A stretch of 64,000 nucleotides of DNA from assembly GCF_902459465.1 (NCBI RefSeq), contig NC_047080.1, forward strand, positions 4,650,001 to 4,714,000. Reading direction: 5' to 3'. The position numbers and the translations under genes are program-made. This document shows, one piece after another, positions 26,343-59,340 of the stretch (position 1 is the first letter of the stretch; the number at the start of each line of letters is the position of its first letter). Source of the stretch: Asterias rubens. Taxonomy: Eukaryota. A model generated the notes under the pieces. It searched no databases. It was not told the origin of the DNA and saw only the letters and a program-made list of their open reading frames with translations.

Positions 26343-26409
26343 CAAAAGAAACGCAGATAACAGCAAATAATGTCAGCATTATGCTGTCCTTCCCCTGACC
26401 AGAATCCAT
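26343..26409 (-). CDS. crb: Crumbs coding exon 1 (signal peptide)
   Basis: ATG at 26409: MDSGQGKDSIMLTLFAVICVSF then G|GTAAGT; phase 1 joins exon 2 to give a hydrophobic signal ending AHA|Q; lies in a CpG-enriched region. Confidence 0.85.
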
Positions 26410-27200
26410 AGTGTCTCTCTGTCTGTTCCCTGAACATAAAAAGAAGTCTATCCTGGTTTAAAAGCCGCCATTTGGAGACATAAAACGTAAAGGTTCCATG
26501 ACACTTTGACCAGTGTGTGCACCGAGCGGTTGGCAGCAGTTGAATTGTGGTGGTTTAAAGACGGTAGAACGATCCGATAAACGTTAATGCAATTTCAACT
26601 TGTCGTCTGGTTCCATTCGGGAATCGATCACTTTTCTGATATTTATTATTGATTGATAACAAATAGTGTACCTCTGAAACCAAATATTTCGTGATATTTC
26701 TTGCAACGAAATATCATTAACAGAGTAATTGTGCTTCCTTGGGTCAAATAAATTCCAATCTAATGGAAATTTTGAGCTGCAAAACTCTGAACTTTGTAGC
26801 AAAATTATCGACTCTGATAATTATCGAATACGACCGTTAAGTTCACTCGTAGGATCGGGTTCAAAGTGCAAAGGTGTTGTGGGTGGAGTCGTTTTTAGTG
26901 TTGGGCGTTGATTTTCGTTTCTCGAATTGTGTACAATAGTTTTGTCTCAAATAATATGGAATTGTTTTGTTCTTTCTAAGTATGATAATAGGGTAATTTT
27001 AATAGATTAAAAGCCGTTTTTCATGTTAAAACATTCGAAATGGAAGCGCATAGCTTACGCTTTGTTCTTTTCGTCATAACATTTCAATTGAGTGAGTCAT
27101 TTTTTGTGTGCAATTACTAGGCCTATAAATTCCTCATTTGCGTTTGGGGTTCGATTAGTTTTTCCAAGCGGAAGTGGTCTCATTAATTAATATAATTTTT
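26410..27200 (-). promoter_or_regulatory. Probable crumbs 5' leader and promoter region
   Basis: CpG-enriched relative to flanks; YY1-like AAATGGCGG (minus strand, ~26464-26472) and ETS/GABPA-like GCGGAAGTG (~27168-27176). TSS not determinable. Confidence 0.5.
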
Positions 27201-27520
27201 TCGAATATTTGGAGAATGTGGATGGATAAACCACAGAGCAAGGAATGGATAAACAAACAAAAAATCTCATAAACGGAAAAACGTTCATTGAGATGGGAAA
27301 AAGTAAGTGGCTCCACTTTTGTCAAACTCTTCTGTCGGCGAAATGGAGAGTTGTTTGTCTATCTTTATAATTTTGTTTATTAGGGCCGGCAGTATGAAGC
27401 TAAAGGTACTAAAGTTGGGAATAATATTTAATGCCTAGATCGATCAAATTACACAAGAGTCTATGAGCGCTGTCTGTACAGCGGAGTGGATGAGTTCCTT
27501 TTTATAAAGTGGTTTATATC

Positions 27521-27574
27521 ATCAAAGATCGTATAGCGCAGCGTAGCGCGCGGCGCGGCGCTATACGATCTTTG
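27521..27574. mobile_element. 54-bp palindromic micro-element with 9-bp direct flank
   Basis: 17-bp perfect stem caaagatcgtatagcgc / gcgctatacgatctttg; GTTTATATC at 27512-27520 and 27575-27583. Confidence 0.75.
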
Positions 27575-55550: not shown

Positions 55551-56465
55551 AAATAAATCCCAAGGTGTCTTAAATCATCAACATACCTATGGAAGGTCCA
55601 TCTCTTATTAGAGAGGCATTTGGAAGTTTCTTAAACACTAACAGTCGCCTTGGGGAGTGTAAGATTTTTAACAACTCCCATATTTCAAGAAGTTCCATCC
55701 ATATGGTAACTATACAATTTACTGATGCTCTGAGAACCTGGAATCACTGAATAGGTTTGGTTTGTGTGTTTATCATTTGCAATTTAACATTACCCAATAT
55801 ATATATCGGGTACGGCTATAAACACTCTTGTGAAGAGGTAATTGTTGAAATGGAAATTGAATGAAAGTTTATGTTCAGCAACCGATCCATCTTTATATGA
55901 ATAACCGATAGAGATATTAATGATTGAATAACACTATCAAGCAGTTCTAGCAGGCGTTTGAATGCCTGGTGGAACCCTCAGTGCGCGTGCTCCTCATCCC
56001 ACGGCGCGTTACAAGACCGTAGCGATACCAGGCACTTATTGGCGTAAGTATTTTGACTTCGAGAACTGTTGTATAAAGACCTCACCGACGCAACGAGTGA
56101 TGAATTTTGCTACTGTCTGGTGCACACCACCAGTCAGGGATTATTTGTTAAGTACAAACATCTGTTTTGATAATCAAGAGAGATTTGGCAAATTTAGTCT
56201 CATTATTTGTGTTGTTTATGATTTTCTCGATATGAATCACCAGCTGAATCTATATAGGTCAGAATTGATTCGAATTTATTTTAAAGGTCCTCGAGGAAAT
56301 GGGTCAATGGGACTTGGGTGAATGTCGTAAAGCATTGCTTATAGTAAGACATTATAGAAATAAATTTTCTCTATGGTGGTAAGACAAAAACCGATAGGAG
56401 GGGGGAATCCCGGTATTCCTGTTTTTAAAACTAGCATGCTAAACAGCCATTTTCCTGCTTACCAG

Positions 56466-56579
56466 TGCCCAATTTCATGGCGCTGCTGTGCTTACAGTTA
56501 AATCACCATGTAAAGCACACAATGCACCGTAAGCACATAATGCAGCGCTAAGCTGCAGTTTGCACCATGAAGTTGGGCC
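56466..56579. mobile_element. Short Harbinger-like MITE
   Basis: gcccaatttcatgg ... ccatgaagttgggc termini as in 32924-33172. Confidence 0.6.
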
Positions 56580-59260
56580 AAGCTTCAATTCTTTCGGAGT
56601 TGACTCTTTCCATATCATTGAAGTCTACATTATTTTCAGACCAAGGAGGGATTTCTGCTTGTGAGGTTTTGTGGCTCATCCATATTATTATTATAGCGCC
56701 ACACCAACTGAATATCAGGTGGCATATCCCCTTCGCGGGGGTGCAAACAACAAGACCAATGCGACATCGACTGTCAGAACTGTCAATAAAGAGCTGAAAA
56801 GATGCTCCAGGCCTTAAGTGGTTCTTCAGAACATAATGTCAGTGAACTTTGTATGTATTTATTGACGCAGTGTCTATCGCATTACCGTGTATGTTCAATG
56901 CGTTGACATAATACTCATCTGACCCGATGGTGTTAGGCTACCAGTCAAGTAGCAAATGCATAACGGATCTCTTTTGCGTAAAAGCCATGGGGGAAGATCC
57001 GGTTTATTTTTATTGACCGCTTTTTTTATCTGAGACTTTACAAATTAACGACGTAATGAGAAAAGGAAATGTCCATTAGTTGTTACGCGCCCTACCTTTG
57101 CGTTGGGTACTATTTATTATTTTTATTTCAATTTAATAAGCAGTGGGTCTTAGTTTGCTCTATTTGTCAATGGAGAGCGGCGGGGGTATTGACTGAAAAG
57201 GTTGTTAATGTTGGGTGCCCCGCTAACCGAACACCAGGGGGTAGTATTATTTAACATTAATAAGAGATAAGGAGCATGACTGACGTGAGGTATCCTTGTT
57301 GATTTCTTTAATGGTTTTCAGATACGGGGCAGGAGCCAAGGACGACCTCGCGTAAAATGAAAACAAAAGTTCAGATTCAATGAGCCACAGTATAAGCAAC
57401 AGTTTTGCTCATAACATAAAACTTGTCAACCTCTCAAAACATACAGTTACTGTATGTTTTCAGAAGGTTCCCCGTTACTTTCTGTAAACAAAAAATATAT
57501 ATTTGCCAAGAAATATGTAACAAAAATATTCTTCAACAGCTCGATAAAACTGAGAATATTGGTCTGTTATATTGGCAATCTTGTTATAGATGTATTCCAT
57601 CCTAAAGTACAAGAACCAGTAGTAAGATTCAAATATCTTTTTTAATCTTCTTCAATCAGCGGCCATTTTGAATTTTACCAACTCAAGCAACCCATCCATG
57701 TATTAAATGCATTCAAGGAGGCCCATTATGAATTTAGAACAAATTGTAAGTTTTGACGGAAGCCCAGCTGCAAGGGTTCAATCATAAAACTTACCCCCAT
57801 TTTGCGGAAATATTTACGTCTAACGGACAGTCCTGCTAATGATCTTCCGTTCCCAGCATGGATAGGACCCGTGTTTGAACTCTTTGGTCCCGGTAAAAAA
57901 GGGGGCACCAGGTCGCGTGTGTCATCTGGGTGGTCTATATAATGGGAAAAGACATTGTGGTATCACAATGAAGGGGGTATTAAATGGCACCGGAAACAGG
58001 GGAGGTAACGTCCGATGGTTCGAAACACTACGACAGGTGGATTGGCGTTCTGAAACAAATTGGGTTATGCCATAAGAGCTCCGTTCCACAGTTACGGCGT
58101 AATTACGTTGGGCGTAAATACGTTGGTCCGGAGCACTTGCCTCACCTCATTTTCTTAGGCAGAGAACACCCTACCTTTATAGAGCACATACATATGACAA
58201 CTTGGTATAAACAATTACTCCACCGTTTTCACTTATTCAAAACAACTTTTAAAACGATGCAAAATAAATGACAACACAAATGAACAAGAAAACTACCCAA
58301 AGTGAGCAGGTAAAAAGGCTAGCGGTACCAGACCAGACGACCATTTTCACGGTACACTTTCTGGGACACAAAGAGCCCCGGACAATGAATTCCCTGGAAG
58401 TCAATGTGATGAAGTGCTGTTTTCTTTGTCAAGTCACCTGTACTTAAAGCAAATATCTTTGTATCATGCAAGCCTCACTGACCAGATCTGATAGGGTATG
58501 AGGGTCGAGGCAAGGCCAAATAAATATTAGTCAAAGTCTGCTGCTGATCGAGCGAGACTCGTCGTCCAGTTGCCCGATGAGAAAGTAACTCTGTTCAGCC
58601 AATGCAGATTCATTATCTAATATGCCCCAATGAATTCATTCAATGGGAAAGATAGGTAAAACCCATTCAGTCATGAAACACTTTTCTATTTCATTTCAGT
58701 GCGTCGTGTTGCCCTAATGTCGATCGTTTTGGCTGTTCACTCCAAGTTTTCATTGGAACTTCAGAAACCTAACTATTAGAAACCTAACTAACTGCAAATA
58801 ATATCCAATTAAAAACAGAGTGTACTGAAATAAAAGTTCCAACAAAGCAATACAAATTCAAATAAAATTTAGAAAGTGTCCACAATGCTTTGTGTTCAAT
58901 TCGATTCTTATACTATAGTGAATTCAACTTAAACTCAAGTTTATGTGTTTAATGTTCAAAATCTCTAAAAAGCTGTATTACAAAATCATCTCGATCTCCC
59001 CGGTCTATAAACAATCTTTTACTTCCCATTTTGGGGGAACGAGGTAGACAAGTTTAAGAAATGCAAATTGCACCTCAAAACAATTATTGCCAATACTGGA
59101 TGACTACACCTTAGGTGAAGACAAAACAGGCATAATCGAAACGTCAACTTCTCTGATTTCACCTTCCATGCTGTTCCTTATGCCGGGTTTTCTGTTATCA
59201 TAACCCGTTCCAATACACACACACACCCCCACATGTTCTAGATTTTATGAATGGACTTAC

Positions 59261-59340
59261 CCATAGCGGTGAAGGTATGCATCCACACTGCACGGCCCAG
59301 CACACAGTTGGAGAGATATCAAGAGCCATGTAACCAGCAT
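59261..59340 (-). CDS. EGFL7: EGFL7/8-like coding exon 1 (signal peptide)
   Basis: ATG 59340: MLVTWLLISLQLCAGPCSVDAYLHRY + GG|GTAAGT; 80 nt, phase 2 joins exon 2 to give AYLHRYGRHVC (cf. AYRPGRRVC). Possible acceptor tctttag| at 59348 implies an upstream non-coding exon. Symbol denotes the EGFL7/EGFL8 co-ortholog. Confidence 0.85.

Follow-up and report, generated by a model that had tools for sequence, protein, structure and literature searches.

Two genes arranged head-to-tail on the minus strand were identified in a stretch of 64,000 nucleotides from the starfish Asterias rubens (NC_047080.1, positions 4,650,001 to 4,714,000; hereafter the window, in which positions are given unless chromosome C20 is named). 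The upstream gene appears, from the architecture of its predicted product, to be of the EGFL7/8 type, and the downstream gene is crumbs. The two genes are transcribed separately and are located on C20, for which correspondence to the proto-MHC linkage group is supported at chromosome scale. Taken as a whole, the data are best explained by separate tandem genes on a proto-MHC chromosome that were probably brought together by shuffling of gene order at the level of the lineage.

Structure of the two genes

The EGFL7-like gene contains 10 coding exons (1107 nt, 368 aa) with a coding span of 30751..59379, as modelled from splice sites and phases.

59379-59261, minus strand: exon 1, placed by splice sites and phases
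47492-47361, minus strand: exon 2, first part of the EMI domain (Pfam EMI positions 1-41, 21.6 bits)
45822-45704, minus strand: exon 3, second part of the EMI domain (Pfam EMI positions 42-69, 22.6 bits)
45295-45200, 41484-41389 and 40924-40829, minus strand: exons 4, 5 and 6, 96 nt each, phase 1-1, with Pfam EGF and EGF_2 matches
39599-39477, minus strand: exon 7, calcium-binding EGF (Pfam EGF_CA 41.4 bits, FXa_inhibition 43.3 bits)
37101-37040, minus strand: exon 8, 62 nt, encoding ...PEYVALQDKVNRIEQ and restoring the frame between the calcium-binding EGF exon and exon 9
31508-31358, minus strand: exon 9, which together with exon 10 encodes ...SLSEQISMLEERLDDCTCKD... and then a basic tail
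30863-30751, minus strand: exon 10, with the stop codon TAA at 30753-30751

An orthologous protein of 368 aa (P0159) from Asterias amurensis is identical to the gene model at 363 of 368 residues. It was retrieved with a two-row alignment that paired the peptide encoded by the second-last EGFL7-like coding exon with a LamG exon of crumbs; this sister species was the only one that the alignment yielded. The stop at 30751 given in the first-pass annotation was retained, whereas the start that it placed at 59340 is likely to be replaced by the ATG at 59379 (MTSLMQ...), 39 nt upstream, in agreement with the A. amurensis protein. The 62-nt exon was the single candidate in a scan of phases and splice sites; it is present in P0159, and its final CAG is the CAG that precedes the next exon in mRNA contigs. 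The last two coding exons are joined (30860-31355) in spliced RNA contigs from 4 runs, and the peptide of the C-terminal exon occurs in one copy genome-wide. An assembly gap of Ns (40216-40432) is contained in intron 6, between exon 6 (ending at 40829, phase 1) and exon 7 (starting at 39599). The phases across this intron are compatible (G+AT = Asp), and P0159 has no extra residues at the junction relative to the gene model; formally, a hidden phase 1-1 exon may lie inside the gap of the A. rubens genome.

The crumbs gene occupies the left part of the window and extends another 15 kb beyond it. The part outside the window encodes three LamG domains and more EGFs, as well as the TM segment and the tail.

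26343..26511, minus strand: crumbs exon 1, with 5' UTR, ATG at 26409 and signal peptide MDSGQGKDSIMLTLFAVICVSFG; supported by spliced contigs from runs X9 and X10
1..26342, minus strand: remainder of crumbs in the window, with the EGF exons in the next two lines
14770-15000, 10135-10608, 9368-9955 and 8482-8640, minus strand: crumbs EGF exons, part 1
5797-6141, 5082-5360, 3248-4225 and 1-744, minus strand: crumbs EGF exons, part 2
C20:4634936-4635151, minus strand: crumbs TM and tail exon, ...RATRGTYSPSRQE...PNEERLI*

The donor of exon 1 is GTAAGT. Pfam identified three Laminin_G_2 matches (64-72 bits) along with many EGF matches. The last exon reads ...ALIGGVTAGAIVLLIVIIVLGVFLINV KNKRATRGTYSPSRQE...PNEERLI* and encodes a single TM segment, a FERM-binding (GTY) motif and a C-terminal ERLI. 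These features establish the earlier identification of the gene as crumbs firmly. The A. amurensis crumbs product contains 2542 aa and is nearer in length to the fly protein than to vertebrate CRB1/2.

A DENN-domain gene is located 30 kb past the crumbs 3' end, convergent with crumbs. When one of its exons was looked up in the language model, only generic DENN was returned, which leaves DENND1 as a candidate subfamily. Human DENND1A, DENND1B and DENND1C flank CRB2, CRB1 and CRB3, respectively, in the same way. With a DENN gene near the 3' side of crumbs, some ancient microsynteny may thus survive at this locus, and the maintenance of a vertebrate-like convergent arrangement by crumbs and a DENN-domain gene constitutes a lead.

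Adjacency and intergenic sequence

The EGFL7-like gene is directly upstream of crumbs, with 4341 nt between its stop codon and the crumbs ATG. No Pfam match was found in the ORFs between the two genes, which bears out the earlier description of neighbours about 4.3 kb apart with no recognisable gene between them, and no Rfam family was detected there. A dispersed repeat (28383-28955) occurs in the intergenic sequence, as does the EGFL7-like gene's long 3' UTR.

27850..30750, minus strand: probable EGFL7-like 3' UTR, about 2.7-2.9 kb, with a break in the contigs at the repeat
26512..27849, no strand assigned: spacer between the transcripts, holding the presumed crumbs promoter

The EGFL7-like mRNA contigs continue to 29717, more contigs at similar depth reach 27868, and AATAAA signals are present at 28048 and 27875. 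The 3' UTR shows 96% identity to A. amurensis against a background of about 92-93%, and the spacer, at 93.4%, is near background. The same adjacency is found in A. amurensis, a comparison within one genus, which under the refuting condition set in the first-pass annotation counts neither for nor against an ancestral pair. The neighbour upstream of the EGFL7-like gene is KDM8-like. A literature search for co-mention of EGFL7, CRB2 and synteny found none. Elsewhere in the window, an Rfam Histone3 stem-loop match (43545-43589) has no histone ORF upstream and was set aside as a chance match or a piece of a repeat.

Chromosomal context and age of the pairing

The genome's only detected matches to NOD (Notch), PBC (PBX) and BET (BRD) are all on C20. 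This chromosome makes up 3.06% of the genome, and the chance of all three anchors falling there is about 3e-5. PBX is located at 3.3 Mb, the crumbs/EGFL7-like pair at 4.63-4.71 Mb, Notch at 9.68 Mb and BRD at 12.0 Mb. The proto-MHC setting proposed in the first-pass annotation is therefore supported at chromosome scale, and Notch, for which it recommended a search, is indeed on the same scaffold. The further proposal of a crumbs-EGFL-Notch microsynteny fails because Notch is 5 Mb away from the pair. Acyltransferase matches on C20 (6.60 and 10.15 Mb) are not adjacent to the EGFL7-like gene, and Rfam detected no miR-126-like RNA in the EGFL7-like introns and no miRNA within the 64-kb window. The chromosome-scale result is an expected one because echinoderm-chordate conserved linkage groups are already well established.

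In the preferred explanation, the pair consists of two ordinary genes in minus-strand tandem, each transcribed on its own, with the presumed crumbs promoter in the ~1.3-kb spacer just past the poly(A) sites of the upstream gene. The product of the upstream gene is a predicted secreted protein of 368 aa that is assigned to the EGFL7/EGFL8 family and has two EGF modules more than the vertebrate proteins, and the downstream gene is the single long-form crumbs. C20 is the proto-MHC counterpart since Notch, PBX and BRD are there too, and the vertebrate relatives of both genes lie in MHC-paralogous regions because both belong to one ancient linkage group. These gene models and identities, the neighbour arrangement, the chromosome setting and the independent transcription are borne out by the data. 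The immediate adjacency would result from shuffling of gene order, within this conserved chromosome, in the lineage of echinoderms or of asteroids and would not represent a functionally constrained ancestral pair; this age for the adjacency, and its lack of functional meaning, are most likely.

Alternatively, the adjacency could be a microsyntenic pair that goes back to the deuterostome or bilaterian ancestor and was retained in starfish but split up in vertebrates, a reading that is unlikely. It is consistent with the presence of both genes on a proto-MHC-type chromosome, with an adjacency that is stable across two Asterias species, and with the DENN-domain gene near the crumbs 3' side, which suggests that old local order can persist. 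The CRB genes map to human MHC-paralogous regions, and the location of CRB2 (9q33) and EGFL7 (9q34) on one human chromosome arm is compatible with a neighbourhood that was later separated. However, gene order within conserved linkage groups is generally scrambled, the adjacency was seen within one genus only, none of the vertebrate CRB paralogues is known to have an EGFL gene beside it, and the conservation of the spacer is not unusual. The EGFL family is likewise represented in the listed MHC-paralogous regions, and the human class III order is ...PPT2-EGFL8-AGPAT1-RNF5-AGER-PBX2-GPSM3-NOTCH4 (PMC1309616). Against an ancestral pair, vertebrate EGFL7 and EGFL8 both keep AGPAT and NOTCH neighbours (PMC1309616), which are not adjacent in starfish. 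Links to Notch have been reported for both EGFL7 and Crumbs proteins (PMC2901201; PMC5829512) and favour an ancestral pair. The more specific proposal, that the tandem is a remnant of pre-2R proto-MHC order in which the deuterostome ancestor had two extracellular Notch modulators side by side, perhaps under common regulatory DNA, and that this order was retained in starfish while the genes were split in vertebrates to 9q33 and 9q34, is quite unlikely. If the pairing were ancient, it would provide a fixed point for reconstruction of proto-MHC gene order and a hint of coupled regulation of two Notch modulators. The results of use at present are a gene model, now validated, of an EGFL7/8-type gene from an echinoderm in which additional EGF modules occur, the placement of crumbs and EGFL7 on one starfish chromosome with the anchors Notch, PBX and BRD, and the lead on the DENN-domain gene beside crumbs.

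Identity of the upstream gene

The predicted EGFL7-like protein begins with a signal peptide, after which come, in order, an EMI domain, three EGF modules, one calcium-binding EGF (cbEGF), a predicted helical region and a basic tail. Its sole hydrophobic stretch comprises residues 9-32 of 368, and it has no TM segment. On the intact A. amurensis orthologue, Pfam places the EMI domain immediately behind the signal peptide (residues 41-113, 41.7 bits). A six-frame EMI search of the genome did not recover the window locus because the domain is split by the intron between exons 2 and 3. EGFL7 is defined by a signal peptide, an EMI domain, a pair of EGF modules (the distal one calcium-binding) and a coiled coil, and the fly orthologue differs in length (PMC2901201). 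The succession of EGF and calcium-binding EGF that is characteristic of EGFL7/EGFL8 was found by Pfam in the starfish exons and in the orthologue. C-terminal helices were predicted at 267-292 and 306-332 in a low-confidence single-sequence AlphaFold model (pLDDT 41). The C-terminal motif SLSEQIS.LEE.L..C.CK may resemble the human EGFL7 C-terminus; a text search with a human EGFL7 C-terminal motif gave no match. The nearest language-model neighbours are the chordate EGFL7 and EGFL8 clusters (0.94, 205-208 shared features), with MEGF6 at 0.76, and P0159 carries the name EGFL7 in NCBI and UniRef, the NCBI names being automatic. When the cbEGF exon was used as a protein-search query with ranking by summed score, only giant multi-cbEGF proteins were obtained, and homologue searches under a length filter, with ORFs surrounding that exon and the second-last coding exon as queries, gave genomic ORF calls alone (P0151, P0152). 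Architecture, the NCBI name in the sister species and the language-model neighbours agree, and together support the earlier assignment of the gene as putatively EGFL7/8-type.

That the gene is instead an independently assembled EMI-EGF protein, or belongs to another EMI family such as Nimrod/MEGF, is decidedly improbable. Proteins of the Nimrod/Draper/MEGF10 type and EMILIN/multimerin likewise carry an EMI domain at the N-terminus, with EGF-type modules after it, and the EGF spacing of the starfish protein is similar to that of NIM repeats. In the starfish protein the cbEGF is preceded by three EGF modules with the CxxxCxNGGxCxxPxxCxCxxGxxGxxC pattern, against one in vertebrates; weak Pfam PEAR1L and teneurin-type EGF matches occur on the gene, and the name of its orthologue was assigned automatically. 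Unlike those families, however, the starfish protein has no TM segment, long EGF array, gC1q or collagen, and the language-model similarity is much higher to EGFL7/EGFL8 than to MEGF6. The possible resemblance of the C-terminal motif to human EGFL7, the single copy of the gene and its position on the expected linkage group also stand against a different family.

Transcription of the two genes

The crumbs exon 1 contigs (from 26494 or 26511 down to 26342) continue into downstream crumbs exons, and none of the RNA contigs joins crumbs exon 1 to any EGFL7-like exon. Contig depth is zero over 26664-27236 in all four RNA runs, and no contig bridges the spacer. In run X1, EGFL7-like mRNA contigs are present and a crumbs exon 1 contig is absent. 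The gap from transcript to transcript is ~1.3 kb, as delimited by RNA contigs and AATAAA signals. The EGFL7-like gene and crumbs are thus transcribed separately in these data, which consist of contigs assembled from four runs and are weak for absence, such that rare read-through RNA could escape. The co-regulated or read-through unit raised in the first-pass annotation, with shared enhancers or a fused or polycistronic RNA, is most improbable: it would fit the same-strand tandem, the short distance (~1.3 kb) that separates the upstream poly(A) sites from the crumbs exon 1 start and the inclusion of EGFL8 in human PPT2-EGFL8 read-through, but it is opposed by the unbridged zero-depth spacer, by the joining of crumbs exon 1 to crumbs exons alone and, as far as contigs can indicate absence, by run X1.

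Comparison with known systems

Vertebrate EGFL7 (VE-statin) and EGFL8, Drosophila CG7447 and the starfish protein share a signal peptide, an EMI domain, one or more EGF-like modules, one cbEGF and possibly a helical or coiled-coil C-terminal part, and all are small, predicted to be secreted and devoid of a TM segment. The starfish protein differs from vertebrate EGFL7/EGFL8 in its length (368 aa against about 275-300 aa), in the number of plain EGF modules before the cbEGF (three against one) and in its terminal basic tail. The NOTCH and AGPAT neighbours and the intronic miR-126 of vertebrate EGFL7/EGFL8, which are features of the vertebrate locus and do not define the family, were not found beside or within the starfish gene.

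Starfish crumbs shows no notable difference from Crumbs/CRB1/CRB2: three LamG domains are interspersed among EGF repeats, and there is one TM segment and a short tail that carries the GTY (FERM-binding) motif and ends in ERLI. C20 resembles the MHC paralogon (6p21.3, 9q33-q34, 1q21-q25, 19p13) in the linkage of Notch, PBX and BRD types with crumbs and EGFL7-like genes, whereas the starfish linkage is of megabase scale and lacks the tight vertebrate EGFL-AGPAT-NOTCH order.

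Structure of the EGFL7-like gene

The window is animal DNA with long introns on chromosome C20 (12.77 Mb) of a 417.6-Mb assembly. EGF-type exons were found on its minus strand by scanning for cysteine-rich open frames, after which splice sites and phases were read. The EGFL7-like gene (30751-59379, 10 coding exons) contains the following parts.

Exon 1, minus strand: signal peptide
Exons 2 and 3, minus strand: jointly one EMI domain (Pfam positions 1-41 at 21.6 bits, 42-69 at 22.6 bits)
Three 96-nt exons, minus strand: phase 1-1, one EGF module apiece
123-nt exon, minus strand: calcium-binding EGF
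Last two coding exons, minus strand: helical Glu/Leu-rich stretch and basic tail; stop TAA at 30753-30751
40216-40432: run of N in the intron between exon 6 (end 40829) and exon 7 (start 39599)

The six-frame genome search missed the EMI domain in the window because it is split across exons 2 and 3. The calcium-binding EGF exon has a phase 1 end, and the next clear exon begins in phase 0. Exons with good splice sites and a length of 2 mod 3 were sought between them, and 37101-37040 was the sole candidate; the CAG preceding the second-last coding exon (31508-31358) in RNA contigs matches the end of this 62-nt exon. The completed model comprises 1107 nt and 368 aa, with an N-terminal hydrophobic stretch only. 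Exons 6 and 7 are both in phase 1 and their junction codon is Asp; therefore, the assembly gap leaves the modelled reading frame intact.

Vertebrate EGFL7 hosts miR-126 in intron 7 (PMC2901201). The introns of the EGFL7-like gene (30751-59379) gave no match to any Rfam microRNA, miR-126-like ones included. An Rfam Histone3 stem-loop match at 43545-43589 on the plus strand (score 34.4, gathering threshold 34) is intronic and has no histone open reading frame upstream; the match is probably due to chance or part of a repeat.

Identity of the two genes

A homologue search with a two-row alignment, in which a 256-aa exon of crumbs was combined with the peptide encoded by the second-last coding exon of the EGFL7-like gene, retrieved P0159 (368 aa), which carries the NCBI and UniRef name "epidermal growth factor-like protein 7 [Asterias amurensis]". 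P0159 equals the model in length and is identical at 363 of 368 positions, which confirms all ten exons and leaves no extra residues at the gap junction. Pfam detects EMI (41.7 bits), EGF, EGF_2 and EGF_CA in P0159. The nearest language-model clusters are chordate EGFL7 and EGFL8 (0.94, 205-208 features in common), followed by arthropod EMI+EGF_CA (0.87), matrilin (0.78) and MEGF6 (0.76). The C-terminal exon occurs once in this genome. Its protein carries the motif SLSEQISMLEERLDDCTCKD, which may resemble the C-terminus of human EGFL7; a text search for such a human EGFL7 motif gave no match. On its architecture, the name of P0159 and the language-model neighbours, the upstream gene is accepted as putatively of EGFL7/8 type.

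The crumbs ATG at 26409 begins a signal peptide, and the 5' EGF-rich part of the gene lies within the window. The remainder, in the left flank, encodes three LamG domains (64-72 bits) and additional EGFs in Pfam, and the last exon encodes a TM segment and a tail (...RATRGTYSPSRQE...PNEERLI*). LamG, EGF, TM and tail together are the defining architecture of crumbs. Both gene identities proposed in the first-pass annotation are thus supported.

Flanking genes

The neighbouring genes are as follows.

C20:4747978-4773163 (fetched stretches L018-L020), minus strand: KDM8/JMJD5-like gene with matches to Cupin_8 and ARM_KDM8_N; nearest upstream neighbour of the EGFL7-like gene
C20:4612343-4622667 (L011, L012), plus strand: G-alpha gene, Pfam G-alpha 76.9 bits; between the crumbs 3' end and the DENN gene
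C20:4576400-4604207 (L023, L024, L010), plus strand: DENN-domain gene, uDENN and DENN exons, 283-aa proline-rich last exon

The N-terminus of the G-alpha protein (...NREIDKCL...) is presumably of the G12/13 class. The DENN-domain gene lies ~30 kb beyond the crumbs 3' end, convergent with crumbs. Its exon peptides may point to DENND1A, and human DENND1A, DENND1B and DENND1C are convergent to CRB2, CRB1 and CRB3, respectively. If the DENND1 identity is true, the crumbs-DENN pairing would be the better candidate for an ancient microsynteny at this locus.

Repeats were observed in the flanks. On the left, two ~0.6-kb copies in inverted orientation, at window coordinates -25849..-25312 and -19961..-19267 (~5.5 kb apart), carry identical 95-aa and 105-aa open reading frames on opposite strands; they may represent the termini of a foldback or transposon-like element located between crumbs and the G-alpha gene. 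The right flank contains, at window coordinates ~74500-77500 (C20:4724500-4727500), a satellite-like array that is visible as repeated 103-aa open reading frames (PCFTPKVP...) and whose period is ~309-312 bp.

Transcripts and the intergenic spacer

Contigs from four public RNA runs, placed on 25900-31600, were spliced. Every run yielded a ~2-kb contig over the EGFL7-like 3' UTR and last exon to 30860 and then 31355-31511, the 3-nt overlap at each joint being alignment ambiguity. These contigs extend into upstream exons by 936 nt in three runs and by 1169 nt in the fourth; on the modelled exons, 936 nt gives a common 5' end near 59475, which leaves no room for another 96-nt exon. On the 3' side of the stop, contigs extend to 29717 and others, of similar depth, to 27868, the latter interrupted by a dispersed repeat of enormous depth (28383-28955). 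AATAAA signals at 28048 and 27875 agree with the contig ends, and the EGFL7-like 3' UTR is thus ~2.7-2.9 kb. In each of the four runs, contig depth summed over the dispersed repeat (also at 29529-29910) reaches the millions, and related open reading frame fragments (...FETSSSKSEVSKSNSW...) recur in the window and flanks.

The two genes were described as same-strand neighbours ~4.3 kb apart; the stop-to-ATG distance is 4341 nt, and the gap between transcripts is only ~1.3 kb. Neither Pfam on open reading frames between this stop and ATG nor Rfam between the two genes gave a match. Crumbs exon 1 contigs were found in two runs (X9 and X10), from ~26511 to 26342 and on into downstream exons. Run X1 contained EGFL7-like mRNA contigs and lacked those of crumbs exon 1, and 26664-27236 was uncovered in all four runs. 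There is so no sign of obligatory co-expression or of the suggested read-through transcription, for which the absence of contigs is not disproof.

Conservation and age of the adjacency

The adjacency is confirmed and is also seen in a species of the same genus: in A. amurensis (GCA_032118995.1, CP134966.1) a 2542-aa EGF+LamG gene lies 4.6 kb downstream of EGFL7 on the same strand. The region is collinear in the two Asterias species, with a non-coding identity of ~92-93%. Part of the EGFL7-like 3' UTR is 96% identical and the spacer with crumbs exon 1 93.4%; the spacer is near background and so shows no sign of special constraint. No paper naming EGFL7, CRB2 and synteny together was found in the literature.

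Notch modulation is common to many EGF-repeat proteins. EGFL7 has been linked to Notch signalling (PMC2901201), and a link of the extracellular domain of crumbs with the stability and activity of Notch has also been published (PMC5829512); calling both genes Notch modulators is therefore fair. A Notch-modulator pair chosen post hoc among many windows carries little weight. An ancestral origin of the crumbs-EGFL7/8 adjacency is considered improbable.

Chromosomal context

Whole-genome six-frame searches for NOD, PBC and BET domains gave the following matches.

C20:9.683 Mb: NOD (Notch), sole match in the genome, LNR matches alongside
C20:3.317-3.401 Mb: PBC (PBX), matches nowhere else in the genome
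C20:11.969 Mb: BET (BRD2/3/4 type), sole match in the genome

C20 makes up 3.06% of the genome, and the chance of three such matches there is ~3e-5. Linkage groups are known to be conserved, and the chromosome-scale result is thus expected. The proposed proto-MHC linkage holds at this scale, with Notch, PBX and BRD on C20, but fails at the fine scale; Notch lies 5 Mb from the crumbs/EGFL7-like pair, which contradicts a microsynteny including it. The LNR region of Notch contains a 207-bp tandem repeat (4.6 copies, 98% identity; L004:1251-2193, C20:9683950-9684892), each unit of which matches LNR in part; either an exon and intron were recently duplicated together, or the repeat is an artefact of the assembly.

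Comparison with known systems

The MHC paralogous regions at 6p21.3, 9q33-q34, 1q21-q25 and 19p13 have Notch, PBX and BRD as their classical anchors (PMC1309616). The human class III order is ...PPT2-EGFL8-AGPAT1-...-PBX2-GPSM3-NOTCH4 (PMC1309616), and this order is without counterpart at the starfish locus; acyltransferase matches on C20 lie at 6.60 and 10.15 Mb. The fly EGFL7 orthologue, CG7447, shares its plan and differs in length (PMC2901201). Compared with vertebrate EGFL7/8, the starfish EGFL7-like protein has two additional EGF modules.
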